From Andalucia godoyi And28 (lineage: Eukaryota > Protista > Jakobida), in assembly GCA_009859145.1 (NCBI GenBank), contig VRVR01000031.1, positions 1 to 64,000 on the forward strand: a stretch of 64,000 nt of DNA. The letters are read 5' to 3'. The position numbers and the translations under genes were made by a program. Below the pieces are notes generated by a model. That model had not been told where the DNA came from, ran no database searches, and saw only the letters and a program-made list of their open reading frames with translations. How positions within the stretch are numbered: the stretch's first letter is position 1; every line of letters begins with the position of its first letter. Below are positions 26,557 to 59,913 of this stretch, piece by piece.

Positions 26557-28356
26557 ATGCTAGCACGCAGTAGCGCTGGACAAGACGTTGGTCAATACGA
26601 TGAGCGTTTGACCCCACATCAGAATCGACTGCCTCGCACGGCGCAGATGCTGATGCCGATGCCACGGCCAGCGACATCCATAATCCCTGATCCCCCTTCT
26701 GTTACGAACGGTGATGAACCGGATGAACATGTAGAAATGAAGAGTCGTCAGTATCGAGCTTCTGTCCGTCGCCAAACAACACCACTTCGAAAATATCTTG
26801 ATTCTGATGAAGAAGATAGCGATGCCCCAGGTGTAAATACAGTTACTCAATCTGTTTCCGCAATACGGGTCGATGTTCAGGTACTTTCTCCAAAGCGGGC
26901 AAATGTCACGCACGATATTGTTGGGTTTCAGCGACAGTTAGCTATCCTGCAGCGATCAGTGCTGATGCAAAGCCACATGGAGCCGAATGTGAAAATATCC
27001 GCACAGCTGCTTCTACAGGAGGTGGATCAGATGATTGGCAATGTTTGTGATGCAGTTCAGTCTGCTGCAGAGTCGGATGATGTTATCACAACTTTAGTGG
27101 AGTGTGCTATCCGAACTGCTTCGGAGACCATGCGATCCGTTGCTGCTGTTGCAAGACATGATTGCAATGACGTCATTCACGAGGCCGAGCAACAAGCAAC
27201 CGAGAGTTGCGTATATGATGACAAGGACCATATGTTTAGCAGTATCGGATCGCGGATCCACCTGCGGCGCGGCCACGACGGTCGTCTGGAGACCGAATTA
27301 TCCACGATGTCGAGCATGCCGAAGCAATCCATCTGTAGACCAACGGAGCGTGTAGCAGATGTGTCGGCTGGATCGACGGTCCGGTTCGACGATGTGCTGG
27401 AGCTGTTCTCTGACGTCTCTAAGCTTAAGGAGAATCTCGTCGCTATCCGGTCTTGCGTGAATGCACGGTCCATTGAATGCTTTACAGCCGCACGAGCAGT
27501 GGTCGCCGAGGTGCGGCAGCAGTGCCAGTCCATCTTGGTGGACGTGCACTCTGCTGAGAAGGATGCGCAAGCGGCTGTTGTAGATGCTCGGAACCAGGCT
27601 TCGGATGTGCTACGCGCGCAGCGACAGTTGCGAGAAGAGAAAGAGCAGACCATTTGTGCTGCAAAAACGTTCATGGAAGTTTCTCATGGAAAACTTCTCC
27701 AGCAGTTGGAAGACATTCGACGGCTGGATGCGAAGTTCGCCAAAGTGAGGGCAGAACTCGGTCCGCGCTGCACGGTCTTTGTGATCGACTGCTCGGGGTC
27801 TATGATGGGTGCAAGCCTGGACGCTGTGAAAGAAGCTTGTCAGTCGTACTGCAAGTTCCGACAGAGCCTTGAGGAAGGAAATGCGGGGAAGGACTCAGTT
27901 ATGGTGGTGCGGTTCTCGCACGAAGCTGAAGTGCACTTGCCGTATGGGATGCTAGCAGACCTTGACAGAGTGGTTGCAGGATTGGATGCCGACGGAGGCA
28001 CCAACTTTGACAGCGCAATGGCAGTAACACTTGTGCAGATGTCGCGAATCAGTTTCAAGCTGCAGGACATGCGCACTGTAGTCATCTTTCTTTCGGATGG
28101 AGAGAGCAGCGTGTGCACGGCGGAAAGGGACGTGAAGGAGATCATGCGCTTGTCACCGCTTGCAGGCCGCATTCGATTCCATTCGGTGCTGTTTGGCACG
28201 GACACGGTCTCGTCTGCGCCGCTGCACAATCTCGCCAACGCCGCATTGGAAGTGGCGGCTGCCTCGTTGTCTTCTTTCGGTATGGCCAGTTCTTTCGAGC
28301 GCACCATCGACGGTGTCATGTTGAAAGATCTGTTCGTTCGCATGGCAGAATCCTGA
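26557..28356 (+). CDS. Coiled-coil protein with a C-terminal vWA domain and intact MIDAS site
   Basis: FVIDCSGSM (DxSxS), VVRFS, GGTNFDSAM (T), IFLSDGE (D). Predicted coiled coil upstream (AQRQLREEKEQ...LQQLEDIRRL). Confidence 0.88.
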   Translation: MLARSSAGQDVGQYDERLTPHQNRLPRTAQMLMPMPRPATSIIPDPPSVTNGDEPDEHVEMKSRQYRASVRRQTTPLRKYLDSDEEDSDAPGVNTVTQSVSAIRVDVQVLSPKRANVTHDIVGFQRQLAILQRSVLMQSHMEPNVKISAQLLLQEVDQMIGNVCDAVQSAAESDDVITTLVECAIRTASETMRSVAAVARHDCNDVIHEAEQQATESCVYDDKDHMFSSIGSRIHLRRGHDGRLETELSTMSSMPKQSICRPTERVADVSAGSTVRFDDVLELFSDVSKLKENLVAIRSCVNARSIECFTAARAVVAEVRQQCQSILVDVHSAEKDAQAAVVDARNQASDVLRAQRQLREEKEQTICAAKTFMEVSHGKLLQQLEDIRRLDAKFAKVRAELGPRCTVFVIDCSGSMMGASLDAVKEACQSYCKFRQSLEEGNAGKDSVMVVRFSHEAEVHLPYGMLADLDRVVAGLDADGGTNFDSAMAVTLVQMSRISFKLQDMRTVVIFLSDGESSVCTAERDVKEIMRLSPLAGRIRFHSVLFGTDTVSSAPLHNLANAALEVAAASLSSFGMASSFERTIDGVMLKDLFVRMAES

Positions 28357-28425
28357 TCCAAAACAATAAAAGAAGTGTACAACGAAAATCTTTTATCATC
28401 AATGCAACAAGAGCTGTGGTCTTTT

Positions 28426-31400
28426 TCATGCCATGTCGTCAAAATCATCCAGGACTTCCCTGCGAACGGTTTTAGGCTTAGTCTGTACTTTGGGCTTGCC
28501 CATTGGAGGTCCGGCGCGCGGAATACCTGGAGTATGCGAAAAAGAAGCAGAAGCAGAAGAACCAGGAGTAGGATGATTATTGCCTGAACCAACAGAAGAT
28601 GAGGATTCGGGATTGGGATCCAGGGAAAGAGAAGAGAATGCAGCCGACATGGAGGTTTCCGATTCGTGCAAAGCAACCGCGCCTTGCTGCTCAATAACTT
28701 CGTCGAGCAAAGCAAACGATTGTGCGAGGTGTCTCAGCAAGAGATTCCCCGGCAAATCCGAGAAGATACCGGCATCCGCATCTCCCGGCAGGAAGATTTG
28801 GAACGTCTCTGAAGCAAACACGTACGAAAGCGGCATGGTTGGCGGAATTGGGCACGGATCGGTGGACAGATATCGTACAGCAGTTCGACACATTCCCGAT
28901 TTGAGCATTTGCTGTTGCGCGGGTGTGAGACGACTGGTGAAGAATTCCGTTGCTGATAAACGGGCGTCCTCAGGGAGATCGTCACGCACCGCAGGGTTGT
29001 TATCCACAAGCGACAAACCAATCGTGTCTTCGATCAGCTCAAACAGCGACACGATCTTGGAGACGCTTATCAAGGCTACATGCGACGTCTGGAAGAAATG
29101 GTCTCGATTAGCTACAAGAATGTCTTTGGCGAAATCTCTCAACATCACGGAAGGATCGGGATTGACGCGAAGAATTGTCGCAAAGACAGTGGCGAAAGTC
29201 TCGATCAGCGTGGCTGGCACCATGCACTTTTTCGTGAACTCCTCCTTCACAAGTGCAACTTCTGTGATCGTTAAGGGTTCCTGTTTGATCTTACGTTGTA
29301 CGGCGCGAACCACATTCTGCGAACCACCGAAAATCTCATCCGAGTACTGCACCTTCGTCAGATCGCTGACGTCGATGATTGCCTTGTTGCTCAGCAGGCT
29401 GGCACCGCTAACGTCCTCCGCAACTTCCCATTCGTAGGTAGTCAGCCGCCCGGCACCGTATTCGAGTCCCTGGTGAGACCACTCGCGGCATACTACAGCG
29501 ACGTGCTCGAAGCCGTCGCAGTGGATGATGTGATCCGTCGTGTTAATCTTCGCAAGTGGAACAACGGGGAACTTGCCGCCGCCATCTTCCAGAGACAGCC
29601 GCGGGAGAGACGTGAGGAAGCGCCCGACAGGAGGATCGATTTCCTGCAGCTGACGCAGAACATCGTTCTGCAGGTCGGCAAGCGCTTGGATGACGGCAGT
29701 GAGCACGATGCCTTCGTCACGATCATCGAACACGGCAAACGCGATGGTAGAATCGATGGTGATCTCGGGGGGCACCGGCACACGGGCAATGCACTGGAAG
29801 CGACGGACGAGCGGTGCCGCCTCCTTCCAAGCATTGGCGAATTCGTAAAACTGACCTCGCAACTGCGGATGATCTGCAAGCAACTGATTGAAGGTCATCG
29901 CCTTAGTGACACGTCGACTCGTTTTCTGATGCACGATGCTAGACACGGCGCGCGCAAACTCCAACACAGGCTGCAGCGCGCTTATTGTCTCCAACTTTTC
30001 GCACTTCGTGAACAGCAAGTTCAGCACAGGATATCTTTCGCGGCAGCCGGTAACGTTCATGAAGGAAGATTGTACGGCCTCATCGGAAGGTGAGTCACGC
30101 AGGCGCCAAACGGCAGGCCACATATCGGCTCTATAGTCAACATCCGCGATGTCATTATGGTTGCACTCTGCAATCTCCAACGGCAGTCGGGACTCAAATG
30201 CACGGTCCGTAATCGCCATGCGGCTCGCTGCCTCGAAATCACCAACCGCGCCCTGTGCCGACCCGTCGGCCATCAACGTGGTAAGCTCCTGTGAAAGAAG
30301 CATTTCCAGGCGGTCTCTTTCCGCTGCGCGTTTCAGCAGAGTGCAAGGAATAGTCTCAGCAGTCGAAAGGAGTTGCCGAATTGCAGAATGCACGAACACG
30401 CATGTGTTTGCAGGGGAAAGGTTAAGCAGCTCCGGAAGAACCTGCATGTCAGAGGCAATGTGGGCGCACAGCGATTCTAGAGGGACTGCGACACCCAGCG
30501 TTACGACAGGACGGTCGAGAAGAAGAGTCGGGATACACATCGACATGTGCAACAGCAGTCGAATGACGCGGAACTGGATGGCATTCATCCCCCGAACAGC
30601 ATCGAATTTGAAGAGCTTGGTTGGATCGATATTGACGTAGCCGGGCTTGATAGCTTCCTTTCCGAGGATCGCTGCAGCATTGTCTCTCGTCAACGGCGCT
30701 GCGTCGATTCGCGTGACACCGTTGCGGACAGTTCCGTAGCCGTTCACTGCACCGATGGGCTCTCCGCATATCGGGCACGTGCCGGTCTCAACCTGGTTGC
30801 CACAGTCATACACGAAATAAAGTCCACCACAATTGCAACGGTACCGCGTCACGCGGTCCGTCTCTTTGGAAAGTTGCGCCAACACCGCAACAATCTCGTC
30901 ATTTTCGGCAGCTGTGGGGAGGAACAGATCTGCCAAAACAGCTGACGAAATTTGTCCGCGTGCTAGACAGGCAAACAGTGACTGTAATCCTGGCTCAAAC
31001 AGATCAGCGGCCAGACGGAAAATGAGAGACGCAACTTGCGAGGAGAACACAAACGACGTACCGTTTTCAGGCACCTGTCCAGAAACCACGGCGAGCCAAT
31101 CAAAGCCCACAACGCGCGGATACTTGCAATCCACAATGTAAGACAGTGCTTTTCGGTAGGACGGGTCCAGCGCGTTGCGAAGGCCCACATCCTCGTTCAG
31201 CAGCCGACGCACCTCGGTTACGAACATATCCATCTCTTGTTGCACAGTTGGCCAGACCTGACCAATAGACCAGGTTCCCGCGAGGAAGAGGAATGTGGCG
31301 CGAACTCGGTCCGGATGCAAGAGATCTGGGATTCTAGCAATACTGCGGGTGGAAAGATAGTCAAGGAAAGTCGAGAAGGCATCCGTCACACCCGGGAGCG

Positions 31401-34400
31401 AATTGAAGACGGGGCATCCCACAGGTCCAGAAGATTCATCGAGGACAGTCGTTTCTTCTGCCCACGGGACATCGAGGAAGTGCAAGATGTTGAGCCTGTC
31501 GCTGGCGAACTCCTCAATTTCGCTCGTTGTACCGAGACCCACACCTACTTGTTTTAATAAAAGAACCTGAACAGCGCGCAGATATCGGCAGTTCCCACTG
31601 GACCATGAGTTATGGACATCATTCAAGAGCCTTACCATGGCACTTCCGTTATCATTCAGCTCATTCAAGTGCACGTCGGCAACGTTCTTCAGAACCACGT
31701 ATACGCACGCCACGGCAGATGCAAGCAGAAGCTTCGAACCACAGTTGGCAGGGTCACGAAGAATCGCAAATGACCGCGCTGCAGCTCGCAGCCAGAGATT
31801 CTGATCGTCGTCGAAGTCAATGCCGACCTCGTCATCCGCAAGCACGTCGATCAACCGATCCACAACAGCGATGAAAAGTGGAGAGTCATAGAATGGCTTT
31901 TGTGCCGGAATGCGATTGAGTGCACGGGATAGTATACCCAGCCGAGAACCAGATCGGGTAAGTTCTGCATCGGCGAAACAACCAGCGGTTACAGCATCAA
32001 GGACTGATGTAACGCTAATCTTCTGAGCAATGTACTTGAGACATGGGATCACAAAAGGTACGAAGCATTCGCGGTCAGCTTCTTCAAGAAATTGCGCAAG
32101 TGAAGGCAACATCTTACCATTGCGGATAAAACGGTTCAAGAACATGACGTAATCTTCCAGCAAGGCGGTGTCTTGCCTGCCAGTAACATCCTGCAACAAG
32201 CTCATGGCAGTCTCCCAGAATGCTTCATCGTCGTCATCCAAAACAGAAAACGCAAGTATGACAAGATCGTTGCGCTCGAGAGACGGATTACGATGGAAGA
32301 GCGTGGCCAGCTCACGCAGGATGCGAACCGACGGCAAAAGTTTCCTATAGCCAGAGCGCTGCAGCAGGATGGTGACCTCGGTGAGATCTTGCAGCCACAT
32401 TTCGATATGAAAATCGGCAGCGTCGCGTTCCAGTTGCGCATCGTCCGAAGGACGAATTGCGGCAGTCAGCGCTGCAAGAAACTGATCATCAAAGGACACC
32501 TCAGCATCAAAGTCTGTCATCGAATCCGAAATCTCGGAGCGGAGTTTGGGGGATGAAAATGAGGACATTAATCGTAGGCGCATGTCAATCTGCCCGCAGT
32601 TTTCAACGTACAAGCGAATGGCAGTCGGTAACTCGCAGTCGCTATCGATGTGCACATCCTGCAGTACCCGTCTGACAATCACGCGATGTGCCTCCAGTTG
32701 CTGTGCGGACTGGGCGACGCCGCACAACGTGCTCAGATACGTCACAAAGTCCTCGAACAGCGCGAGTGCAGAATCGGAGCCAGCAATCAAGTGTTCGGGA
32801 ACGACGATGCTGGCTCCCAGTTCCTCGAATAGCCAATCAGCGATTTGAGAATCAGCAAGCGCATTGTCCTTTGCGTGGCTCTCAAACTCGACACGCGCCT
32901 GAGAAAACTTTGCGAACAAGACATGGGCAAACGGGAACCGATACGAACCGAGACGCGGGACATGTTTTCGATTCACCATCTGAGCATCAACGCGACCATT
33001 TCCAAGAAAGGGCTTCTGAATGAGAGGAAAGAGGACATGCGCACAAGTCCGGTCCAATATTCCGGCAAGCGAAGCAGGTAGAGCATCGTCGACATCGGAA
33101 GTGACAACCTCCATCATCGCCATATCCTCGAGGGCCTTGATGGCCAACACCATCGGCCACAGAAGATGTTTGCGGATAGTTTCCGCTCCTGTTTCTAACA
33201 GAGAGCCATTCATGAACATCTGCCCAGTTGCCCGAGCCAAGTCAGAAAACCAAGTGGCTGACTTGGCAGTCTGCGCCTTTTCGACAAAGTGGCGAGAACA
33301 GCGAATCAAGATTTTGCAAAACTGGGAAGAAGCTCTTGCACGACGACAGTGATCACTCATTATTTGTGACGGCACCTGAGCGTCTTCGGCAACTACCAGG
33401 TTTAGCGCTCGAGGAAGCGAAGCATACACGCGTTCTTCCAAAGTCGCATCGTCGGTCAGAATGATGTCGCGGATTGCCCGCTGCATCCACGGCATCAAGT
33501 CAGACGGCTGGTCTGTAGATGCAGTGCGGTGGAAGTGCAAGTGTTCCCATCCCGCGATGAAGACAGTGCGAAGCTCTCTGGACGACTCTTCCATATGGCA
33601 AGGCGCTCTGTGGCAGAGAACAACAACTCGCTTGCGGAGATGCGTACCGTGCTGTGCAGTCTCCCACTGTGACAGCATGTCTTCCAGAAGATTTAAAACA
33701 TTGAGGAAATGCTCAGCTTGATCAGTAGCGTGCATTCGTACGACGTATACAGTCTCGTGGATGGACCGCAGGAAATCTTGGAAGTTCTGGGCAAGTTCGA
33801 ACTCGGCCTTTACACCCGAGAGCATGATCACGTGCGCAGACTGTGGCATCACTTCAGACATGCTTGAGAACTGATCGAGGAAGCAGTGCGCAACCGCTAG
33901 TTTCGGCCTACTATCGTCGAGCAAGAATTCCTGTAAACTAGTGGGAAAGCAGTGATCTGCAACAAAGTGCAAATGGTTCGCGACTTGTTCTTGTGATTGT
34001 TGAGCCAGTTTCGAGTAGCGCATTCGGGCAACACCATCAAGAGTCATCAAACGGAGCATGGATTCCTTGCACGCCTCCATGAGAGCATGACCACTATGAA
34101 TGGAGTGCATCAAGAAGACAAGAGAGGGTACCGTCTCCGTGGGATCGTATCCCACAAAAGTAGAAGAAGCATCATGACCATCTGCGTCCGAAACGGAATC
34201 CACCCATCGACGAACTGTATCGCAAATGTTCTTCAGATCGTTCGAGGATTGCAGCACATCGGCAAATGACGCATTCTGCTTCTCGAAACGATTCAAAAAC
34301 GGTGGATCTGCGTTGCGTACGTCCTCCTGGTCCATGAGGACAACGCACTTAAAGCCATCAGCAACCGTGCAGACTGGATTGGAGAAAGCTCCGATGGCGA

Positions 34401-37400
34401 CACGGCAACTGCGACGCCCGCCGACAATGACGTAGTGTTGGTTCAGAACATCGTACAGTGAAGAGTAGATGCCGTCGTGCTTCCGTAACACCAGCACACG
34501 GCCTTGTTCCATACAAAGAATGATACGACTCAACACTTGGTACCGGTAATCGTCGCACTGATCTCCGGGCCACAGACTGCCCCGAAGAATGAGTGGATTT
34601 CGTTGATTGGAAGTTTGGATCACCGATTTGAGGATGGAAAGCGACGAATCAGATGACGTGATCATCATCAGATGCCGGGATAGCGAATCTTCCAGATTGC
34701 TTTTAATCAAATGCATGACGTCATGTGTTCGAAAATCGAATGCGAAAACAGACGAAGAGAACTTGTGGCGGAACTGATCAATAATCGACGGGCTGGCTGA
34801 AGGCATACCGGAAAAATTGCGCTGCACCGCTAATACGAATTCACGACTCACCTGGCCGGTCAACACAATATTACGATGCATAGCCTTGCAGAGCGAATAA
34901 AAATCACGCAGCCCGTGAAAGTTCTCTCGTAGCTGGTTTTTGTAGTAATGATTGTAGGCATCCGCCAAGTTGGGAACAATATCGTTGATTTGGTGCATGT
35001 GAACCGACGATGCGCCGATCAGCACCCGTGCGGTAACTTGCAAATCCCCCACCGACAGATCGGGCCGGGACAAATGGACCGCGCGGTTCATCTTGGCGGC
35101 ATCGAGTCCCCAGTTGGACACGCCAACGACGGCCACTTCGGGCATCTCTCCGGTACTGGGTTCTAGCAAATTGTGGAGGACCTTGAGCGGATTGTGAACG
35201 GAAATCTCAGCCAGCCCGACCTCATCGAGGACGACGACAGAAATCACAGAGTTGGCCCCGAACTTGCGTTGATAGTCAACTGCCTTGTCAAAAACCTTCT
35301 TGATGCCTTCCGATGTGGATGATTCGCTCCCTTGGTACGAGACAAACTGCAGCTGCGGAAACTTCTTGAAATATGAATGACTGGAATCCTTTCCCCTTAC
35401 GGACTGCTGGATTAAGGAGAGAGACAGTGACTTGCTGCATCCGGGTTTTCCAACGACAAACAGCGGAATCTTGTTAAGGATGCAGACAAGCATCACAAAC
35501 ACGTTCTCAATGAGTGCGGCGTTGGGGGCGACCTCCTGATCCAGCACCATCATAGACAAGTACGACAGGCCTTCGATGTGGATGATGTTCTGAAACAGAG
35601 TACCGTCAACCAACGACGCAATTTCTGATTTGTTCATGACCGCAACAATTGTGTCCGCAAACAGTTTGCGAGCCTCCACAGTGGGAAGCCGAGCATGATA
35701 TGCGTGTCCGAGAGCTAGCACAGTCGCCCGTAGCCAATTTGGAACATTACTCACACGATAGAAATGATGATAGTCATACCCCGTCATGAGAGCGCCGGAG
35801 CGAAGCAGCGGCACGAGATGTTCTGAAAAGAATTCTAAGAGAAGAAGGAACCTATTAACATCTCGGAGGCTGACTGCAGCATCTGCCTCCACCGCCTTGA
35901 CAAACCTTTGCGCCCTAATCACAAGTTGAACCACGAGATGGTTGCGATTGTCTTGGAGAAAGTCTGCGTTCTTCATAGCTTCCGAGTCAGCAATCTTCTT
36001 GAGCACCATAGCTTCAATGTAGCGCTCTTCCTCGACATCATCTAATCGGCCGAAATCCCACACATATTCCATCATTGTTTCCGGTAGTGGATGCACGCGG
36101 TACACAAGCTCCGTCGACTTGTCACGACGCTGCGCAAATTCTGGTCTTTCAAGACGCTTGATCCGGATATTTAGGCCAGCGGACACTGCTTCGCCGACTC
36201 GACGTCGATACGGGTTGCAGGCGCACAACAACGAGACAGGCGGCAAGATTGCCCGATCTCGGATCCTACGATGGCAAACGACATCGTTGAGCAGGCCGAG
36301 ATGGACGGATGTGTTGATTTCATCGAAAAACAGCCACACTGGTACCCCTCTTTCTATCGATATCTTCTCCGCGTTAAGAACTTGGTCTTCGATATCTGCC
36401 GCCGATATTCCAGCGTGGACAAGAAAAACGATGAACTCGACAGCGGATACCAATGCCAAGTAGCGGATGAGACTTGTCTTTCCGCAGCCTGTCTCTCCCA
36501 TCAGAACGACTGGCACGTTTGCCTGAATCCTTGCACTGATTAGCATCATCTTGACAAAATTGTCCAGCGTCAGTGCGTATTTTCCGTCATCAGGCTGGAC
36601 AAGACGTGGATTCTTGCAACAAATTTCAATCAGGCGAGTTCGCAGCTCCGTTGCAGTGGCATTGGCAAGCGCATTTGCATTTGCACCCTGTGCCTTTAAC
36701 AGCTCCACAAGTCCCTGCGGCATTGTTTCCTGCCGTCGCGCAACTATCGAGACTACGCTCGTGTTGGAGTTGTGGAAAAGGATGAGCAGTTGGTCTGTTT
36801 CCTCCCATTTCTTCATGCCGTTGAACCGGGCGTCGGCGACAGACATCGACCCATGTTGCTGTCGCTGCACAGCCCGGAGCGTCTTCGTGTTACGCTGCGC
36901 AAGCCCGCGGCACATTTTGACCATGAAAGCGACCAGGTCGCTACGCGCGGTAGTTGCACCGCGAGAAGACGCTTTGATTGTACTCACTTTCCAGAAGACA
37001 CTCGTGGACATTTTGCGTAGCTGCACGGCGAGAGTGTTGACGAAAACGCGCACTGTCGCGAAGGTGAAATCGTGATGTTCACCTTCGACAAGATATCTGC
37101 GTAAAAGAGCGCGACATTCGTCAGCAGACAAGGCAATGGCGGCTTTGGGACCGGAAAACAACACGTCGACGGTGTTCAAGGTGTCGGCGCTGAGAGCGTG
37201 AAGGTATGCACACACTACTTGTGTAGGGTTCAGCACATAATTGGAAACCTGCAGACGGTCCCACTGAAGAGTGGGAATTTCCAGGCTCCCAAGCATGCTC
37301 AAAAGCGGAAGGTCCTGCAGTTGCTTCTCATGGGTATTCGAAATCTCGACGTAAACGTATGGGAATGGGCAGAAAAGGGGGCGAATGTCGGAATCAGAAA

Positions 37401-42873: not shown

Positions 42874-43733
42874 TTTTCGTTTTACCAAGTTAGAAACCAA
42901 GATCAAAGTGAAATGCGAAAGAAAATAGGGAGAAACAACAGGAAGCGGAGGAAGGAGACCGAAGAGAGAACTGTGTGAGAGACTATGAGGCACTGTGAGC
43001 TCGTGCAAGTGAGAGGTCGGCACTCAGTAACCGGCAGTGCTGACATCCGCGTGAACTTGATGGACGAAACCGGATGTCCGGAATTCTGGAACACCCGGAT
43101 TCTCCATCTCGCATCGTTCCTTCGTTTGCTCCTCCTCTGACCAAGTCGTCCGTGACTCACTTTGCAAGTCACTCAAAGAAAAGGCGCTTCAAATCCGGGC
43201 TCCATCCTGCTCACACGCAAGGCTGAGAACGGACCGACTGCTGAGACGGATGCTATGCGACAGTAACGGAAAGCGCATCTTCGCCCAAAAGCGCTCTTTC
43301 AAGCAGGCAAGCACGACAATCATTCACCCAGTGTGTGATCGGACAACCAGGGATCTGCTCGTCTGTAACTTCTTTATTTTCCCAAACTCCCGCGACGATC
43401 AAACGCGATGGACAAACGAGCAGAATCAAGTTTTCATCTTGCAATCCTTCAATCCCCATCAAGCAATGTTAGAGCAGATCATTTGTTTCATTCATGTGTA
43501 ACGTTACTGTCAACGGCACAACACACAAACTCGAGAAATGGCAGGCAGAAGGGGAGTCGGTGAATCGGAACAAAGGGAGCTTGTTTTCTGGCCCCGCCGA
43601 CTTCTTGCGTGAGACAACATTCACTTCAATTTATTTTTGGCTTTATGTGAGATGCATGTACAGTTCAGTTTTATTATGGAAATTCGTTCATTCTTCTGAA
43701 TTCAATACAAACGCACTTACCACTCTCTGCTGA

Positions 43734-44945
43734 ATGAATAAAATGGCTTCTAGTGTGATGCCGTTCCACTGTGGACATTGCAATCTCAGCTTGACTTCCG
43801 AAGATTTTCCATCATTCGCGATGACGTCCGAGTGCAACCACGACCCGATTTGTTTCATGTGCTTTCACAACCAATCTCGTCACAAATTCGATGATGAAGA
43901 GGAAGAAGATGATGATGACGAGGATGAGGAAGACGACCACGACAATGGCGCTCCTATTGCGTGTCCGATGTGCAAAAAAGCGGTTCATCCGCTCCTGGCA
44001 GCAGCTGCAGACATATATGCGCGTTATCGTGCTGCTGGCGGTCTCCAAACCGGACTGGATATCGGCGTCGCTGCCCACGCACAGAGTGATGATAATATAC
44101 TGTTCCCAGACACGTACGACTTGTATGTATCCACGCTGGACGGCCGGCGCAGCATGTGTTCTGTCACGTCGCTGTGGAAACTGCAAGACTTGTTGGAGTG
44201 GTGTCGGAAGAAGTTCGGTTTTCGCCCCCAACAACAGCGTTTGTACCTAGGAGACCGCGAATTCTCCGGTAAGGACGCGGAGACGTGTACCAAGCTGCTT
44301 GGCGCCGATCTCGGCGTTGGCCCTGATGCAGAGCTGAACCTGGTGTTCGTGTTATTGGAGGTCGGAACGGATGGTGGTGACATCCGCACCGTTGTGTTCG
44401 ATTTGAAATGGGGCTATCCTGCAGCTGGCCGCGACTACTTGGACGGTTCGTGCCTCATTTTCGCTGGCCACGATTTTCGCATCCCTATCGATTTCAATAT
44501 GCAGGTGATTCCGGATGAAGCAGGTCTCGATTACATTTCTCATTCTGGTGACATTATGGACGACTCCAAGAGGCTTGGTCATCATAAAATCCAAGTCAAC
44601 CTACAGGCCACGCCCCGTGATGTGACTGCAATGTTCTTCACGCTCAGTGCCTACAACTCCAGCACTATTGCGAGCTTTCCGACAGCAGCAGTCTCCATGT
44701 TCGACGCTCGGCGCCCAGAGGATCAACTGTGCGAGTACGCAGTATTGAAGGAGGCAGGTGCGCATCAGGGTGTTGTCATGTGTGCCCTCGTGCGTGTTCC
44801 TAGTGCCAGAGCTGATCCGACGCACTCGCCCTGGACGGTGGTGGCGTTGGGCACGGTTTCGAAGGGCAACGCGAAAGACTATGGACCCTTGGTGCAGACA
44901 ATTAATGGTCGGTGTATGCGTACGTGCGAAGCAGCTGCACATTGA
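43734..44945 (+). CDS. RING-HC + ubiquitin-like + TerD-family domain protein
   Basis: RING ligands CGHC, CNH, CFMC, CPMC with an acidic insert. Ubl LYVSTLDG...FGFRPQQQRLYL. TerD-like DLKWG...DYLDGSC, HSGD, HKIQVNL..TP.DV..MFF.LSAY, WTVVALG. Confidence 0.8.
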   Translation: MNKMASSVMPFHCGHCNLSLTSEDFPSFAMTSECNHDPICFMCFHNQSRHKFDDEEEEDDDDEDEEDDHDNGAPIACPMCKKAVHPLLAAAADIYARYRAAGGLQTGLDIGVAAHAQSDDNILFPDTYDLYVSTLDGRRSMCSVTSLWKLQDLLEWCRKKFGFRPQQQRLYLGDREFSGKDAETCTKLLGADLGVGPDAELNLVFVLLEVGTDGGDIRTVVFDLKWGYPAAGRDYLDGSCLIFAGHDFRIPIDFNMQVIPDEAGLDYISHSGDIMDDSKRLGHHKIQVNLQATPRDVTAMFFTLSAYNSSTIASFPTAAVSMFDARRPEDQLCEYAVLKEAGAHQGVVMCALVRVPSARADPTHSPWTVVALGTVSKGNAKDYGPLVQTINGRCMRTCEAAAH

Positions 44946-44996
44946 TCGATCTCTGGGGAAGTGGATAAATAACCGTTTATGACTGTTAAGAAACGT

Positions 44997-46549
44997 CTAT
45001 CCAAAATATTCCACAAAGCACAACCACACTGCGGCATTCGAAATGTAGCGGGCGGTTCCGGCTGTGGACTGGAAATACGCCTGAAACAGCTTAGTGAAGC
45101 CATTGTCGATCAATATGCGTCCGCAGGGAGTCGGACCGTCTAGAACCGCGTCCGCAATTGAGATTAGCGGATGGTCGTCAGTCGAAGTCGCGAGAACTTG
45201 CATTCGTCCCGTTGCATTGGGGTAACAGATTGTATTTCCCTCATACAGCTGCTCAATTCCGGTCAAGATCAGATGCATGCCAAAGAAACCCTTTTGGCGC
45301 GGGTCGCCTCGACGCAGCACTTGCATTCCTGGTGTATTGCCGACGAGTTGTACTGGGGAACCTCCAGTTCCCAAGTCCAGTTTTGCGAGAATGAAATTTG
45401 CGTGCAAAAAGTATGGATCATTGTCACCCCATAACATTACTCCTCGAAGACTCCGACTAAAGTCCACGACAGCTCGAACGAATTCCTCCTTATCAGAAAA
45501 GGGGTCCCGGAATGTGCAATGACTAATGACCCACAGGACGTCATAGTCCACGCGTGCGCCAGGCTGCAAGCTCTGCCGTACCATGCGAGTAAATTCTTTC
45601 TCTGACTCAGTAACCTCAATCTGAAACCCTTTAATCGTCTTCAAGGCATGCACGGCGCATGACCGCAGTTCATCGGGTAACATGTAAGGACAGAAATTGC
45701 CCACAAGTACGCGGAATTCCGAGAATGCACCGTCAGCGCCCAGATCGAACTCCGTGCCTGCGGCGTTTCCAAACGCATCCTTCTGATAGTAAAACTGCTG
45801 CTGTTCCGCTGAAAGTTTGTTGTAGTACGTCACCACGAGAGAAAGCCGCAGATGATCGAGGCCTTGGTTTTGCGCATTTCGAATCACATCTGGGGTAATG
45901 TACTGATCCAGAGTCATCTCTTTGTTGGCTGAAGCCTCCTGTGTATACGACAGCATGAGTATTCAAAACAGGACTTAAAAACAGGAATAGGTACAGAGAA
46001 TGCATACCACAAACTCGGTCTCGCCGAGAAACAGCTTCTGCAGTCGCGGACTCGGATGCTTCGAGTGCATCTTCTGAAGCGCAGATTTTAATTCGAAAAT
46101 AGACGTCTGCGGAGTTGCTGTCAACGAAAACTCGATGCCGCTCACGCACGACACAACAACCATCGACGTAAAGTCTTCTACGGCGATTTCGTTATGGTCG
46201 AATGCTGCACTTGCGCTCAGCTGCTGAACGCAGATGCCTCCATCCCGGAGAGAATGTGTCCAAATGCGCCACTGCTGGAGCTCGCCTTCGGAGAGGGCTC
46301 TGTGGCATGACCGACACGATTTGCAATCATCATCTACTATGCACTGGACATGCAAGGAAAACAAACAGATGTGAACAACATGTGCGTGTGCACAGCAGAT
46401 CTTCTCGCTGTTGCGAATGAGAACAGATAACATACGTTAACGCACAGACCGGCAGGGTGGGTGCATCCGACATGAACCGCACACTCGAACGTCAGATAAG
46501 AGCTTTCCACTCCGCAGCGGAGACACGTCAGTGCACTTCCTGTAAGCAT
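44997..46549 (-). CDS. Three-exon RING-HC + ubiquitin-like + class-I-GATase-like (GIFT/ThuA-like fold) protein, 463 aa
   Basis: Exons 46549-46436, 46343-46008 and 45938-44997 join in phase 0 across GTATGT..CAG (92 bp) and GTATGC..CAG (69 bp) introns. This restores the RING CLRC..CTH..CVN|C..CRSC and the Ubl VSCVSG...QKLFLGETEFV|EASANKEMTLDQY. C-terminal motifs: FDLGADGAF, KGF, YDVLWVIS, WGDNDPY..AN, LYEG.TI, GRILIDNGFTKL, AGTARYISNAAVWL. Confidence 0.78.
45939..46007 (-). other. Spliceosomal intron 2 (69 bp)
   Basis: GTATGC donor and ACAG acceptor; removal joins the two halves of the Ubl in frame and removes a stop. Confidence 0.82.
46344..46435 (-). other. Spliceosomal intron 1 (92 bp)
   Basis: GTATGT donor, pyrimidine tract, TCCAG acceptor; removal reconstitutes a RING Cys pair. 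Confidence 0.8.
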
Positions 46550-47038
46550 CGCGAATGCAGTTGGATGAATCCGCGGGGTTTGACGATTTGCAAGTAGCAA
46601 TATACTGACATGCGCAGAATGGCAGTCCGCTCTCCGCAACAGGATTTTCGAAGTCTTCTAGCGATGCTTTCCAAATGGGACTACAGACGCTGAGCATCGA
46701 AATCCGCTGGGAGCAGATTCGAAGACAAGACAGAATATCCACTTGGTTCCCAGTAGAGTGATATGAACGACTTCCAGGACGCATGCTTGCAGTCTTTAGG
46801 TTTCCTCAGAAGCATCCCAACATGTTGTTACCACGTTCTAGACAAGCAGTAAGCCTACATTGCGTACGTACAGTATCTCTCTCACCATGCTCACTGGCTG
46901 TACTCAGCATCAGAAATAGTCTCAAGGGCTTTCCTTCACAATTCGAATGCCCAACATTAACATCGATCCGAGTTTGTTGCAGGGCGGTGCTCTTTTCGAT
47001 TGATTTTGGGACTCTGCGTTTCCTTCCAAAGTCCGTAA

Positions 47039-49336
47039 ATGGTTTCGTTTAACAAATGCCCTGCCGCCGATGTCTCTACTGGTCTTCACCGCAGCAGCGG
47101 CTCTGTGACATCACTGACGCTACAGCTGTGCAGCGATCTGCGTAAAGGAGTAGATGGGATCTTGTTGCTTGTACCGCGTTTGAGAGAACTGAAAATTTCT
47201 CGGCTTCCTGCAGATGATACCGGGACCACGGACGAAGTGATGGAGGCTGTAGCCAATGCACTACGGCGTGTGCCGCAACTGACACACCTGTCCATTCAAC
47301 AAGTGCGCCTCAGCGACCGCGGAGCGAAGTCTCTCAGCATCCAACTGCAGCAGCTTCCTCGTCTTACGCGCCTCGACTTTTGTCACAACAATATCGGGGA
47401 CGACGGAGTGCGTGCTCTTATGTTAGGAGTGAAGCACTGTCGCAACTGCGTCCATCTCGATTTGCGAGATAACAGGTTCGGTGACCGGGGATTGTTCGAG
47501 CTCTACCGTTTTTGGGCCGAGGGTGGTCAATTCATGAGCTTCAATTCTTCCGGCGACGAAGACGAAGACGAAGTTGGGTCAGACAGCTCCGCTGTGAAGC
47601 TGTGGATGTGTCGTGCTAGAGGTTTTCCAGAAGTCCTGTTCAACACGGCATCCAACAGGAAGGTGTACGATCACGCACATGCTGCGTGGGAGCAACAGCC
47701 GTCTGTTTTCGATGGAAATCAGGGCGTGCAGCAGACTATCATTGCTCTCTCTTCTCAAGTTCCCATTTCCACTCTCCCTGTGCTGTCTGTTGACCACACC
47801 GCAGCGCATCAACTTCATTCCGATATGCGTGAGGAGTTAGCTCAAGAACACATTCGTATGCAGCAGGAATTTGATGCTATGCGGGAAAATATGGCAAAGG
47901 ACTATGAAGACCAGTTGAACGCGATGCGGCAACAACTGGATGTCGAACGCCGCGCCAAGGTCGATCAGCTGACAAACTTTGAAAATTTTGCACAGTCGCT
48001 GATGGAGGAGATTTCATTGATGGGATCGACTTCCAAGTCTGCGTTGCGAGAAGAAACAAGAGTTTTGGCTCAACGGCTCGGCAGTTCGGCCCAGAGCATG
48101 GCCGAACGGATACTTCAACTCGAAGCAGAAGTAATGGGTCGCATTACACAGATGTTTGATGAGCGAACGTCGCAAAGCGAGGACCGGTTTCGGCAGATGC
48201 GTGAGGAGATCGAAGCGCTCCGGCACGAGATCGACTACAGCGTGCTGGTTCGTGAGAACAGGGGTGAGAGCGGATCAGTCGCAGTGCCAGAGATTCGGCT
48301 TCAGGACTTGGAGAACGCAACCGACGCGGTTCGGGACGGAATGCCTGCTAGCTGGGCGCAGCTTGGCTCTGGTGCGTTTGGCCGAGTGTTCAAGACGACA
48401 TGGACAAAGCCCGGTGGTCGCAAAGTGGACGTGGCCGTGAAAGTACCTCTGTCTCCTGATAACTTGTCGAAAGCTGAACGAGACAGAATCACCCGGGAAG
48501 TGCGGATTTTGGCGGAAGTACGACATCGGAACATTGTTGCGTTACATGGCTTCTTACCAAAGCGCGGGTGGATTGTCACGGAGCTCATGGGACTCGATCT
48601 TGGAAACGGTGCCACCATTCCGTGCCTCTGGCAATTCTTCAATCGGATGACGCGCTGCCATTTGGACATTCCTGTGGCCTGGCGGTTGCAATGGGCGCAT
48701 CAGATAGCGGAAGGTATGCGCAAACTTGCGGCGACGTCTATTCTCCATCGTGATCTGAAGAGCAGCAATGTCTTGCTTCGACGTGATGTAGACTGCCCTT
48801 CCGAGGAGTTTCAAGTGTTTCAGGAGTGCCTTCTCCAGAGCGAAAGCGATGATGCGAATGCCAAGGAGCTTTCAGAAAAGCTTGCTAGTCTGTGCTGCCC
48901 GGCTCTAGCCAAGGTATCCGACTTCGGCGAGGCACGATTGTCCTCGTTACAGACCCTCAATACGGAGGGAGCACTGCACGGCCCAGTAGGAACGTGCGCC
49001 TGGGTTGCGCCCGAGATCTGGCAACGCACAATCTCTCCATCTGAAAAATCCGATGTGTTTTCATTCGGCATGATGCTTGTTGAACTGTGTCACCCGGAAT
49101 GGGGCCACCCCTGGTACACCATTTGTGAACATGATGCGGAGCGGATGAAAAGGCTTGTGTGTGATGGTCGTCGTCCACCCGTTACACAGGATGCAGTGAA
49201 TCGCATGCCTCCTGGTTTCGGAGCGCTCATGTCCGAGTGTTGGGACGCGAACCCGGATTTGCGACCGTCGTTTTCTGGAATTGCGGACAGGCTTCAGGAG
49301 ATGCGCCGACAGTCTCTTCTCAGAGAGAACTTGTGA
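47039..49336 (+). CDS. RI-like LRR + coiled coil + TKL protein kinase; an upstream exon is possible
   Basis: 28-residue LRRs (LTRLDFCHNNIGDDGVRAL, VHLDLRDNRFGDRG). Long heptad region. LGSGAFGRV, VAVK, HRDLKSSNVLL, DFG, GTCAWVAPE, DVFSFG, CWDANPDLRPSF. Confidence 0.9.
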   Translation: MVSFNKCPAADVSTGLHRSSGSVTSLTLQLCSDLRKGVDGILLLVPRLRELKISRLPADDTGTTDEVMEAVANALRRVPQLTHLSIQQVRLSDRGAKSLSIQLQQLPRLTRLDFCHNNIGDDGVRALMLGVKHCRNCVHLDLRDNRFGDRGLFELYRFWAEGGQFMSFNSSGDEDEDEVGSDSSAVKLWMCRARGFPEVLFNTASNRKVYDHAHAAWEQQPSVFDGNQGVQQTIIALSSQVPISTLPVLSVDHTAAHQLHSDMREELAQEHIRMQQEFDAMRENMAKDYEDQLNAMRQQLDVERRAKVDQLTNFENFAQSLMEEISLMGSTSKSALREETRVLAQRLGSSAQSMAERILQLEAEVMGRITQMFDERTSQSEDRFRQMREEIEALRHEIDYSVLVRENRGESGSVAVPEIRLQDLENATDAVRDGMPASWAQLGSGAFGRVFKTTWTKPGGRKVDVAVKVPLSPDNLSKAERDRITREVRILAEVRHRNIVALHGFLPKRGWIVTELMGLDLGNGATIPCLWQFFNRMTRCHLDIPVAWRLQWAHQIAEGMRKLAATSILHRDLKSSNVLLRRDVDCPSEEFQVFQECLLQSESDDANAKELSEKLASLCCPALAKVSDFGEARLSSLQTLNTEGALHGPVGTCAWVAPEIWQRTISPSEKSDVFSFGMMLVELCHPEWGHPWYTICEHDAERMKRLVCDGRRPPVTQDAVNRMPPGFGALMSECWDANPDLRPSFSGIADRLQEMRRQSLLRENL

Positions 49337-49896
49337 ATGCACTGTGAATTTTGACGGTCGTTCCAAGCAAGATCGTGAATTCCGTTCTCTCTCATTGCCT
49401 CCCAAGTGACGTGTTCTCAGAATCTCTGTTGAACATGTTTTTTTCATTTTGTTCTTCCTCTTCCTCTTAATTCGTCCATCATCTCGGTAAAAAGGATCAA
49501 AGTATTGTCACCAATTCCTCGTACAGACTCTTGCAACAATCGTTTGCGAAGGTGCGAATGCACGAAAAACGTTATCGGAACTTGTCATCGAAAAGGAGTC
49601 CTTCACATCTGGAGCCGCGGAGTTCAGCACATAGATGTTGCAGAAAACGTTTCTCAATATCTGCTGCGTCGAAAAAAGAAGGCAAACAGGCAATGATGAC
49701 ACTCGTGGTCAGCAAACGATGCGAAACAAACGATAAAGCGCGATATGACGTCGCCAAACGATTGTTTTATTGTAAACAAGACAGTTCATCATTGAGGACT
49801 GTCCGCTCCAAGAATTTGCTGCCGAACATCCATCTGATTCACCGTTTCTGTTCGAATTCTGTGGTGGTGCCCACACGAATTGCATCCCAGTTGCTC

Positions 49897-51861
49897 TTAA
49901 TCGAGCACGACCATCGTGAGCATTGGCACGCCATCCAACTCTTCGACGACAACACGGGTCTTCTTGATTTCAGTTCCACCCACACGATTTGTAATGAATT
50001 CAAGGACGCGGTCGCGGGCCATCTTGATGGCACGGGCACCGGACATTCCTTGACCGTCCTTGTACTCTTTGATCATAAAGGGGCGCATGTTGTCTTCTTC
50101 ATACTCGAACTCGAAGTTACCCACGACCCGGACTTCGCTCTGGGGGCCCGTCATGACAGGTGGTTTGAAAAGCTCGGCCTGCAGCTCGGCCAGGAATTCA
50201 CATGCAATCAGCTTCGCCTCCTCGTCAGTGAACCGCACGAACGGCACGATACGGCTGAACCGAGATACGAGAGCATCGCGCTTGACCGGAAGCAGTTCCT
50301 TGCGCACAAGTGGATTGACGATTGCCGTGACCATTGTCGCCAGGCGCTCCACCGCCTCGGGGCCCTTCGTGAGGTCGAGAAAGTTTGGTTTTTCGCGACA
50401 GAACCGATCCAGCTCTTCTTGGCCCCAGTTGCACGTCAGCAAGAAAATCGCGCCGCGGCAATCAATCTCCTTGTCTGTCACTTGGTTGATGCACCGACCC
50501 TCCTCGAAGATGGGATACAATGCATCGAGGTCTCCGGGGCGGAACTTGTCGATTTCGTCGAGCAACACAACAGATCGCTGACAGTTGAATTTGCTCAAGA
50601 AGGTCACCAGACTGGTTTCGCGATCGGAGCCCACATAGCCACGAGACGACCCCAGCAATGCGTTGCGGTCCGAAATCTGCGAGAGATCCAACCGCAGGTA
50701 CACATCTTTGCCGTCATCATTTGACTGTGCAATTGCGGTGCCAATGGCCTCCGCTAGTTGTGATTTACCGTGACCCGGAAGTCCCGGCAACAGTGCGACT
50801 AACGGCCGCGACAACAGCGCGGCCGAAGCATATTTTGCAAAAATGGCATCAAATAGCATCGTCTGCGCCGCTTCTTGGCCGATGGCGCACAAACGGATTG
50901 ACGGCAGCATCGATAACTGCAGCGATTCCAAGATGTCCCACTTTGTTTCCGAAATTGGGAACAGTCGTTCAGCACGTTGTAAGTAGTACAACATCAGGCG
51001 GCTGCATGCGACGTCTTTTGCGCTGCGACCGTCGGGAAGGGTCATGTTCGCATCAGCACCCATTGACAAGAGGAATCGAACGACCTTGTGGCACTTGCGG
51101 CTCTTCAAGGCAGAAAGAAGCGGCGTGGCAGATGCGCATCCGTTACCGTCCGCACTATGCGTGTTCACATCGGGTTTGAACCGATTCATGTACGACATCA
51201 GTACCTTGAGCATGGCATCGCCGCTGAGTGCCAGCGCCATCAGAATGGACCTGCCTGCCGAGTCGCGCTGATCGCAAACCTTCTCCGCAGGAATCCTTGT
51301 CAGGGCCTTCCAAAACCGCACGGCATCCAATTTCGTGGCGGAGGCCGTCGCGTCATCGACATCGGACTGCATACCGCCTTCATTGGCCGCGGAGGGGCCC
51401 CCAGCAGTCTGGTTTTCCTGCACACACTTCTCGAGCACCGCACAAATACGCTGAAGTCTCTGAATGCGTACGGAGTCATGGGGAGAGTCCTTTGCAACTG
51501 CCCTGAGAACTTTCTTCGAATACGAGAAAAGCTGCGGAGGCGCGGGCGGTCGTTGGTAGTCAACCATGAATCGGATCAGTGACTCATGGGCAAGGTTGAT
51601 CGCGATCATGCACAGCGACTTGTTGACATGCTCAGTGGGGATGCCAGGGACAGCAGACAGATCGCGGTGAAAATCTACGAGATCCCGCACTTCGTACAGT
51701 TCCTTGTGAACTTCAGGCATCGCGAGTCCACCCTGGTGAGCAGCGGTCAACAACTGGAAGACACGAAGCGTCTCCTGGTTCTCCGTCATTTCTCGGGGAG
51801 TGCGCATCGAAGTTAGGGGAGAAGCGGAGAAGTTTTGTTGCGCTCGCAAGTTGGAGGACAT
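49897..51861 (-). CDS. Ankyrin repeats + ClpB-D2-type AAA+ ATPase (Skd3/CLPB-like architecture)
   Basis: ANK-like TPLLSAL...VVRFLLSMGADAN. Walker A GLPGHGKS, pore loop GYVG, Walker B LLDEIDK, sensor-1 LTCN, Arg finger SRF, and GARAIK in the small domain. Confidence 0.85.
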   Translation of the reverse strand: MSSNLRAQQNFSASPLTSMRTPREMTENQETLRVFQLLTAAHQGGLAMPEVHKELYEVRDLVDFHRDLSAVPGIPTEHVNKSLCMIAINLAHESLIRFMVDYQRPPAPPQLFSYSKKVLRAVAKDSPHDSVRIQRLQRICAVLEKCVQENQTAGGPSAANEGGMQSDVDDATASATKLDAVRFWKALTRIPAEKVCDQRDSAGRSILMALALSGDAMLKVLMSYMNRFKPDVNTHSADGNGCASATPLLSALKSRKCHKVVRFLLSMGADANMTLPDGRSAKDVACSRLMLYYLQRAERLFPISETKWDILESLQLSMLPSIRLCAIGQEAAQTMLFDAIFAKYASAALLSRPLVALLPGLPGHGKSQLAEAIGTAIAQSNDDGKDVYLRLDLSQISDRNALLGSSRGYVGSDRETSLVTFLSKFNCQRSVVLLDEIDKFRPGDLDALYPIFEEGRCINQVTDKEIDCRGAIFLLTCNWGQEELDRFCREKPNFLDLTKGPEAVERLATMVTAIVNPLVRKELLPVKRDALVSRFSRIVPFVRFTDEEAKLIACEFLAELQAELFKPPVMTGPQSEVRVVGNFEFEYEEDNMRPFMIKEYKDGQGMSGARAIKMARDRVLEFITNRVGGTEIKKTRVVVEELDGVPMLTMVVLD

Positions 51862-59800: not shown

Positions 59801-59913
59801 CATAGCCGCAGGCTCCGCATGCAGGGACTGTTTCTTTTCTTTTTCAAGAAAACTGTTTTTTTCTTCGCTTTCAAACTGCGAAATCGGCGTTGGAGGTTTT
59901 GCAAATCTTTAAC

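Follow-up and report, generated by a model that had tools for sequence, protein, structure and literature searches.

In mammals, RNF213 (mysterin) is an antimicrobial ligase, and for the RZ finger of the human protein C4516 has been proposed as the nucleophile and H4537 as the general base (PMC11549300). The protein is built of a stalk and a dynein-like AAA core with two P-loop modules, together with a C-terminal region that carries the RZ finger. In the present study we analysed a locus of the jakobid Andalucia godoyi And28 that encodes an RNF213-family protein within a run of six contiguous genes, at positions 26557–51861 of a 64,000-nucleotide stretch of ordinary nuclear DNA (NCBI GenBank assembly GCA_009859145.1, contig VRVR01000031.1, positions 1–64,000 of the forward strand; the whole stretch is hereafter called the window). 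An initial annotation had proposed that the six genes are parts of one ubiquitin-immunity pathway. All six were found where it had placed them, the outer ends coinciding with the first ATG of gene 1 and that of gene 6, and its domain calls proved right for every gene by Pfam, PDB, Foldseek and direct reading. Our results point to a smaller unit. We put a probability of about 0.5 on the reading that the RNF213-like protein (gene 2), a RING-Ubl-TerD protein (gene 3; Ubl, ubiquitin-like domain) and a RING-Ubl-X protein (gene 4; X is our name for its C-terminal domain) are functional partners, that a vWA protein (gene 1) may be a fourth, and that a kinase (gene 5) and an ankyrin-repeat AAA+ protein (gene 6) are unrelated neighbours.

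Three other kinds of described system bear on this locus. That AAA+ proteins of the MoxR clade associate with vWA domains is well documented, and in midasin the MIDAS (metal-ion-dependent adhesion site) binds the Ubl domains of Ytm1 and Rsa4. In A. godoyi, neighbouring genes similarly encode a giant multi-AAA protein, a vWA protein with an intact MIDAS and two proteins that bear Ubl domains, although here the vWA is on a separate polypeptide and there is no ribosome-biogenesis context. A second comparison is with the bacterial Ter systems. TerD is a Ca2+/metal-binding domain, and Ter components are said to have been recruited to ubiquitin/Ca2+ systems in some eukaryotes, a view reportedly put forward by Anantharaman, Iyer and Aravind in 2012. 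In the related TerY-P layout, a vWA protein, a PP2C phosphatase and a kinase form a predicted metal-sensing phosphorylation switch, and related modules are antiphage (PMC10542128). The A. godoyi locus also encodes a TerD domain, a vWA protein and a kinase, all inside 25 kb, but its TerD is embedded in a RING-Ubl protein, its kinase is of the eukaryotic leucine-rich repeat (LRR) tyrosine kinase-like (TKL) type, no PP2C was found among the 17 window open reading frames (ORFs) scanned, and the window showed neither TerB nor TerC nor TelA. The third group consists of prokaryotic NTP-dependent conflict systems (the vWA-MoxR ternary and DO-GTPase/GAP1/Hsp70 systems), which likewise join chaperone-like NTPases, vWA domains, Ubl conjugation and variable effectors (PMC7159879); that paper mentions no amidotransferase-, GATase- (glutamine amidotransferase-) or ThuA-like domain. 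The likeness lies in the Hsp70-X and vWA-X contexts described below, whereas the eukaryotic version has RING-Ubl proteins and an RNF213-type AAA+ protein.

The RNF213-family gene and its RING-Ubl-TerD neighbour

The two genes are divergently arranged, and their features are as follows.

28426–43023, minus strand: gene 2, RNF213-family AAA+/RZ protein, an ORF of 4865 codons (annotated model ANDGO_08381, 4764 aa)
36475–36498, minus strand: first P-loop of gene 2, GETGCGKT (aa 2176–2183), followed by a Walker-B-like LFFDEINT
35428–35451, minus strand: second P-loop of gene 2, GKPGCSKS (aa 2525–2532), a variant Walker A
30751–30855, minus strand: RZ finger of gene 2 (aa 4057–4091), CxC variant
43024–43733, between the divergent genes 2 and 3: spacer, a possible shared promoter
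43734–44945, plus strand: gene 3, RING-like finger (aa 13–82), Ubl (about aa 128–210) and TerD (about aa 215–395)

The product of gene 2 is 100% identical with the EukProt entry ANDGO_08381. Among the 93 homologues found were proteins of Branchiostoma, Pelomyxa and Symbiodinium that bear the name RNF213, and the AAA core (aa 1965–3023) matched the human and mouse RNF213 structures in the PDB with an E-value of ~1e-121. Pfam gave AAA matches and an RZ finger (PF20173) at 36.6 bits, above the cut-off of 27, so that the giant RNF213-like AAA+/RZ identity of the first reading was upheld. In BLASTP against three homologues (Branchiostoma, Cymbomonas and a metagenome sequence), collinear blocks covered aa 1255–3160 and 4020–4820. 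Thus both the stalk and dynein-like AAA core, with its two P-loop modules, and the C-terminal region, with the RZ finger and the nucleophile cysteine, are homologous with those of mammalian RNF213. The variant Walker A of the second P-loop is also present in four RNF213 homologues (P0009, P0019, P0060 and P0020). In contrast, gene 2 has no RING (by Pfam, a consensus regular expression or a Cys/His density scan) and no CBM20 match, its hinge/E3-shell region (about aa 3160–4020) could not be aligned, and its RZ finger is a CxC variant without an equivalent of H4537. An alignment with mouse RNF213 and six homologues showed that a C-x-C pair stands at the site of the mammalian C-P-x-G-H, as it does in the homologues of the green algae Cymbomonas and Mesostigma and of amphioxus (Branchiostoma), and that the cysteine matching human C4516 is kept (YDCG). 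The RZ histidine is likewise missing from the Cymbomonas homologue.

The product of gene 3 has a RING-like finger with C3HC4 spacing and an acidic insert (C-x2-C-x17-C-x-H-x3-C-x2-C-x35-C-x2-C). Its TerD domain just passed the Pfam threshold (PF02342, 25.4 bits; cut-off 25.3), its ubiquitin match in Pfam was weak, and an exact-sequence look-up returned no database record. The TerD family to which it belongs is rare: a word-indexed search gave six homologues, all with precomputed TerD matches. The RING-like finger and the acidic HSGD.MDD motif of TerD are conserved in homologues. By alignment, the full collinear RING-Ubl-TerD layout is shared by a Cetraspora protein (P0002) and four other eukaryotic sequences (P0003, P0004, P0005 and P0007). 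A scan of viral contigs with the TerD alignment gave no match.

We inspected seven other loci with RNF213 homologues and, for the six with DNA, ran tblastn with the window proteins over ~140 kb of flanks in total. In the amoebozoan Pelomyxa schiedti (L002, JAHLWZ010000957.1), an unannotated ORF of 397 aa with RING-like, Ubl and TerD parts was found at 5226–6419, 1.5 kb upstream of the RNF213 gene and on the same strand. It matched gene 3 with an E-value of 5e-30 in tblastn and 3e-34 in BLASTP, the latter over aa 35–379 against aa 13–383 of gene 3. Thus the adjacency of RNF213 and RING-Ubl-TerD genes is common to Discoba and Amoebozoa, and the expectation that the genes stay linked elsewhere is borne out for this pair at this locus, whereas no TerD, vWA or X neighbour was found at the five other sequence-checked RNF213 loci. 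The orientation differs, the A. godoyi pair being divergent and ~0.7–0.9 kb apart. Because the TerD family is rare and ~140 kb of flanks were examined, a chance TerD match near the Pelomyxa RNF213 gene is unlikely, although we attach no exact probability to it. Furthermore, the RNF213-like, TerD and X families each gave a single A. godoyi match in their respective searches, which makes a chance adjacency of the three genes unlikely. For animals, we found no description of a partnership between RNF213 and a RING-Ubl-TerD protein.

Some further observations concern the surroundings of RNF213 genes. In the Pelomyxa locus (5226–7578), at least five B-box-like zinc-finger ORFs lie in the 1.5 kb that separates the TerD ORF from the start of RNF213, and beyond them, further upstream, is a Schlafen-type AlbA_2 gene. 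At L007, too, a B-box gene comes after the RNF213 homologue. The spacer between genes 2 and 3 of A. godoyi holds no RING or B-box ORF. Three loci (L006, L055 and L056) come from one metagenome sample, ERZ25074155, and represent one eukaryote with at least three RNF213-like paralogues with RZ on separate contigs, whose neighbour genes include RhoGEF, RhoGAP and Costars. A DDE_3/Tc3 transposase is upstream of the RNF213 homologue at an unrelated locus (L001), and a DDE_1 gene is upstream at L056.

Gene 4 and the X domain

Gene 4 initially appeared as two ORFs. Its introns were read from the DNA, and the exon pieces were searched separately.

44997–46549, minus strand: gene 4, three exons, 463 aa (38 + 112 + 313)
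46436–46549, minus strand: exon 1, 38 aa, start of the RING-like finger (CLRC...GCTH...CVN)
46344–46435, minus strand: intron 1, 92 nt, GTATGT...CAG
46008–46343, minus strand: exon 2, 112 aa, end of the RING-like finger (C..CKSC) and most of the Ubl, which continues into exon 3
45939–46007, minus strand: intron 2, 69 nt, GTATGC...CAG, with an in-frame stop
44997–45938, minus strand: exon 3, 313 aa, X domain

In A. godoyi, introns occur in ~12% of 864 surveyed genes, are all of the GT...AG type and measure 55–756 nt (PMC7050145), a range that fits both introns of gene 4. The resulting 463 aa is the exact length of the database model P0101 (ANDGO_08350), whose C-terminal domain covers residues 151–463; the ANDGO annotation of this gene names a Dictyostelium purpureum protein. 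After removal of intron 1, a RING-like finger (CLRC...GCTH...CVNC...CKSC) can be read at the N-terminus, giving the same RING-Ubl N-terminal layout as in gene 3. The Ubl domains of the two proteins were matched by BLASTP at E 0.002, with 12 of 33 residues identical around LQKLFLGETEF in gene 4 and QQRLYLGDREF in gene 3.

The X domain had no Pfam or NCBIfam match, yet 677 homologues were found at E ≤ 1e-3 among 1.84 billion representatives, with members in Euglena, Ploeotia, Stenamoeba, Cyanophora, Tetrahymena and a few bacteria; two members weakly matched Pfam ThuA. The AlphaFold2 model reached a pLDDT (predicted local distance difference test) of 90.9 with an alignment of 87 sequences, compared with 35.8 for the single sequence. 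Foldseek matched the model to STM1381, STM3548, the N-terminal domain of IFT52, HisH and CTP synthase with a probability of ~1.00, and also to the trimerisation domain of GH42. For the group of ThuA, the IFT52 N-terminal domain and STM1381/STM3548, E-values ran from 3e-5 to 1e-4, although the TM-scores were modest (0.42–0.48 on the query). At the level of the predicted fold, this confirms a class-I glutamine-amidotransferase-like (flavodoxin-type) domain, in agreement with the 'GATase-like' call made at first reading. The superposition on this fold (ThuA, the IFT52 N-terminal domain and STM1381/STM3548) does not extend to the catalytic residues. Neither the alignment of 87 sequences nor one of 12 has an invariant or near-invariant cysteine, the nucleophile elbow after strand 166–170 reads WGDNDP, and the invariant residues are N58, D65, H222, E233, R274, D278, T282 and N301, of which H222, E233, R274, D278 and N301 are distinct from the class-I pattern. 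By its residues, X is predicted not to be a canonical amidotransferase with a Cys-His-Glu triad.

The fusion partners of X overlap with the domains encoded at the A. godoyi locus. Among the 87 members, Pfam partners were EF-hand, the commonest (16), WWE (8), TerD (3), ubiquitin (2) and vWA (2–3), as well as Hsp70, and longer members carry a microbial-type PARG, a SecA-like helicase or Hsp70. X is joined to TerD in P0108 (X-TerD) and P0147 (EF-hand-X-TerD), both with TerD domains recognisably similar to that of gene 3. Fusions to vWA occur as X-vWA in P0230 and P0233 and as vWA-X in P0161 and the bacterial P0216, and ubiquitin-X proteins are found as P0106, P0109 (Stenamoeba), P0255 and P0256.

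In a Nanopelagicales metagenome-assembled genome, a vWA-X gene shares a same-strand array with a vWA/PP2C/kinase trio, which stands five genes ahead of it. At L042, an Hsp70-X gene is the last of an array with three DO-GTPase-like genes, and systems of the DO-GTPase/Hsp70 kind have been predicted to act in biological conflicts (Kaur et al. 2020, PMC7159879). Elsewhere, a gene for a YhcG PDDEXK nuclease comes after Hsp70-X (L041), and an X protein lies near a GerE/NB-ARC/TPR STAND protein (L036). The full order in the Nanopelagicales array (L003, 1777–11551, and L004) is DUF4407, an unknown gene, vWA, PP2C, kinase, two unknown genes, a TraG/VirD4-like ATPase, another unknown gene and vWA-X, with an integrase and several transposases after it; this looks like a mobile TerY-P-type island. 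On a eukaryotic metagenome contig (L010, 6238–13747), a gene for a 1248-aa PARG-X protein stands directly downstream of one for a 1132-aa homologue of guanylate-binding proteins (GBP). Three metagenome loci with a G+C content of 21–22% (L049, 2–11521; L053; L054) contain ORFs that exceed 3800 aa, are truncated by the edge of the locus and end in an X-like domain and then VWA_4; the N-terminal 3300 aa of the L049 giant had no Pfam or PDB match and no similarity to gene 2.

Genes 1, 5 and 6 and the genome setting

The remaining three genes flank those described above.

26557–28356, plus strand: gene 1, helical/low-complexity N-terminus of ~400 aa followed by a C-terminal vWA domain
47039–49336, plus strand: gene 5, LRR (RNI-type), coiled coil and TKL-like kinase
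49897–51861, minus strand: gene 6, ankyrin repeats and a single AAA+ domain of the ClpB-NBD2 type (NBD, nucleotide-binding domain)

The vWA domain of gene 1 (aa 409–575) matched Pfam VWA_2 at 46.4 bits (7e-12) and VWA at 34.9 bits (2e-8), and its MIDAS is intact (DCSGS, GGTNF and SDGE). No TerY-specific model matched, only the generic VWA and VWA_2, and the similarity to ITIH4, BchD and sortase-target vWA domains was equally generic, as was that to the vWA of the bacterial vWA/PP2C/kinase trio (24% identity, E 0.001). A specific assignment to TerY was rejected. A Ter-like ancestry of the locus is supported to some extent by the bacterial vWA-X gene, which shares an array with a TerY-P-type trio. 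As regards an AAA+ protein working with a MIDAS vWA partner, a MIDAS-intact vWA gene does adjoin the AAA+ gene, but the pairing did not recur: at L001, L002, L006, L007, L055 and L056, tblastn showed the RNF213 homologue to have no vWA gene at a distance of up to 10 kb. Membership of gene 1 in the module is tentative, and its support comes from the X-vWA fusions and from the fact that AAA+ proteins of the MoxR/midasin type are generally associated with vWA domains.

Gene 5 gave Pfam matches to LRR_6 and PK_Tyr_Ser-Thr (139 bits), and with the motifs VAVK, HRDLKSSN, DFG and APE its kinase domain is predicted to be catalytically intact. Gene 6 matched Ank_2 and AAA_2 and has a Walker A (GLPGHGKS), a Walker B (LLDEID) and a pore loop (GYVG). 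Its best PDB match was human mitochondrial CLPB/SKD3 (E 6e-21), aligned over both the ankyrin repeats and the NBD; the two proteins share the order of ankyrin repeats followed by one ClpB-NBD2-type AAA+ domain with GYVG, but the identity is low. The origin of Skd3 has been placed in choanoflagellates (PMC7343390), and the same combination in a jakobid may reflect either an older origin or convergence. Because its best solved relative is CLPB/SKD3, gene 6 has an independent housekeeping explanation as a disaggregase. No fusion, conserved neighbourhood or paralogy was found that links either gene to the others, and the window contains two more ORFs with kinase-domain matches, one at 171.7 bits and one at 21.8 bits, below the cut-off of 31.7. 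The proposal that the LRR kinase and the ankyrin AAA+ protein are pathway parts therefore found no backing; both genes are probably bystanders.

The initial annotation had also pointed out the tight spacing of the genes. The 69-bp and 51-bp gaps between convergent genes are exact, the former separating the ends of genes 1 and 2. However, in the ~20-Mb genome of A. godoyi, spacers measure 44–691 nt, with an average of 217 nt, and mostly separate oppositely oriented genes (PMC7050145); gaps of this kind are the norm, and the spacing therefore carries no functional signal. The supplementary files of the genome paper mention neither ClpB, ankyrin and TerD nor the gene ids. The G+C content is even over the region (0.50–0.54), and there are no tRNA genes in the window. 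An integrated virus or horizontally acquired island was considered and rejected because of the even G+C content, the spliceosomal introns and the eukaryotic homologues.

Other ORFs of the window were also noted. Directly left of gene 1 is an intact DDE_3 (Tc1/mariner-type) transposase ORF of 650 aa (24185–26137, minus strand). An ORF of 1010 aa (59890–62922, plus strand) combines a ResIII/DEAD helicase core with a C-terminal Methyltransf_8 domain, and one of 875 aa (1161–3788, plus strand) has an asparaginase domain at aa 471–840 after an N-terminal extension of ~470 aa without annotation.

Alternative explanations, proposed mechanism and significance

The idea of one six-gene pathway thus divides: for genes 2, 3 and 4, comparative evidence speaks independently in each case, through the Pelomyxa adjacency and the domain fusions, gene 1 remains tentative, and genes 5 and 6 drop out. 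Several observations weigh against a partnership of even the first three or four. The RNF213–TerD linkage occurs in two of seven DNA-searched RNF213 loci, namely the window and Pelomyxa; within 10 kb of the homologues at L001, L006, L007, L055 and L056, tblastn found no TerD, vWA or X. At a further RNF213 locus, for which gene calls were used, HECT fragments and two unannotated genes were present but no TerD, vWA or X call, and no RNF213 was found in the examined flanks of the Cetraspora TerD gene. None of the sequences returned by our searches came from a relative near enough to A. godoyi for a comparison of synteny, the best RNF213 match being 41% identical. A simple tandem duplication could account for the neighbouring positions of genes 3 and 4. 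In the RZ finger of gene 2, glycine occupies the position of H4537 (GAVNGY compared with GGxNH). The vWA is a promiscuous domain, and that of gene 1 matched the X-fused vWA domains with an E-value of only ~0.08 in a set of 150 sequences, again a generic similarity. In the ubiquitin-X proteins, the N-terminal canonical ubiquitin could be a cleaved-off precursor and no signalling domain. The bacterial contexts of X are single examples, and the one locus from a GTDB scan (L005, Oligoflexales) has housekeeping neighbours alone. Finally, a comparison of four upstream regions revealed no convincing shared promoter motif: 19 10-mers were shared, against a mean of 7.4 and a maximum of 20 after shuffling.

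In one alternative explanation, the locus would consist of six unrelated neighbours in a compact genome, with the tandem duplication of the RING-Ubl genes as their sole historical link. The normal spacing, the missing promoter motifs and the five RNF213 loci without such neighbours agree with this, as does the fact that vWA, kinase, ankyrin and AAA+ domains are among the commonest in eukaryotes, two further kinase-domain ORFs being present in the window itself. It leaves the recurrence of the RNF213/RING-Ubl-TerD pair in Pelomyxa and the X-TerD fusions of other organisms to coincidence, even though the three families each appear to be single-copy in A. godoyi, and we regard it as rather unlikely. 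At the opposite extreme, all six genes would form one defence module with the LRR kinase as sensor and the ankyrin AAA+ protein as unfoldase, joined to the vWA protein, RNF213 and the two RING-Ubl ligases. The contiguity of the genes, the divergent arrangement of gene 4 and the kinase gene across a 490-bp spacer, the union of vWA, kinase and phosphatase in bacterial TerY-P modules and the fusion of X to another chaperone, Hsp70, could be cited for it. Nevertheless, it is very improbable given the lack of any fusion, conserved neighbourhood or paralogy for the kinase and the ankyrin AAA+ protein, the CLPB/SKD3 explanation for the latter and the failure to find a PP2C among the scanned ORFs.

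The module might also be real and serve another purpose, acting in Ca2+-dependent stress signalling or in proteostasis (quality control of membranes, lipid droplets or aggregates) and not in antimicrobial or antiviral defence. EF-hands are the commonest partner of X, TerD itself binds Ca2+ or metal, and X-Hsp70 fusions exist. In addition, Arabidopsis RGLG1 is a vWA-containing E3 ligase under Ca2+ control in hormone signalling (PMC7155146). On the other hand, prokaryotic X occurs with a TerY-P-like trio, with DO-GTPases, or next to genes of mobile elements and a STAND NTPase, contexts typical of conflict systems (PMC10542128, PMC7159879); X is also fused to PARG and WWE and has a GBP neighbour, and mammalian RNF213 is an antimicrobial ligase. 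We consider a purpose confined to stress or proteostasis unlikely, and a defence role is suggested by analogy with mammalian RNF213, the conflict-system contexts of X and Ter biology.

Returning to the partnership of genes 2, 3 and 4, we infer from homology and context that the proteins may interact physically, respond to a ligand and act on a substrate in an immune or defence function. The two small proteins would serve as RING-type adaptors that recruit an E2 enzyme, with C-terminal domains that sense a small ligand. TerD, a β-sandwich with an acidic HSGD.MDD loop, would be a Ca2+/metal sensor, and X may be a sensor of signals related to Ca2+ or ADP-ribose, as its partners (EF-hand and TerD; WWE and PARG) suggest. 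The internal Ubl domains could dock on to the giant AAA+ machine and/or, at its MIDAS site, the vWA protein, after the model of midasin with Ytm1 and Rsa4. The RING-less RNF213-like protein would then act as an ATP-driven scaffold, possibly with a transthiolation cysteine, and the output would be ubiquitin tagging triggered by stress or infection.

A broader proposal, which we hold to be doubtful but possible, is that RNF213 has an ancient dedicated RING-Ubl partner with a TerD/X sensor, a partnership that already existed before Discoba and Amoebozoa diverged. On this view the A. godoyi locus would correspond, in a eukaryote, to the defence islands of bacteria: a Ter-derived Ca2+/ligand sensor would gate ATP-driven ubiquitin tagging, and X would be an effector or sensor common to prokaryotic and eukaryotic conflict systems. 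In the literature searched we found no description of an RNF213-centred cluster, an RNF213/TerD partnership or the X domain, which agrees with the remark at first reading that no such cluster was known.

RNF213 is the major moyamoya susceptibility gene as well as an unusual antimicrobial ubiquitin ligase, and its recruitment and regulation are unclear. A conserved RNF213/RING-Ubl-TerD partnership in two distant protist lineages would point to an ancestral co-factor, with the sensing of Ca2+/metal or a nucleotide-like ligand as a possible trigger, and the idea could be examined in amoebae. The X domain is widespread, has no Pfam or NCBIfam model and has fusions that span ubiquitin, TerD, vWA, EF-hand, ADP-ribose-handling domains and Hsp70; for these reasons it may well prove to be a new domain of conflict systems or stress signalling. 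If the linkage holds, A. godoyi would provide one of the rare examples of a free-living protist in which functionally related genes are clustered.

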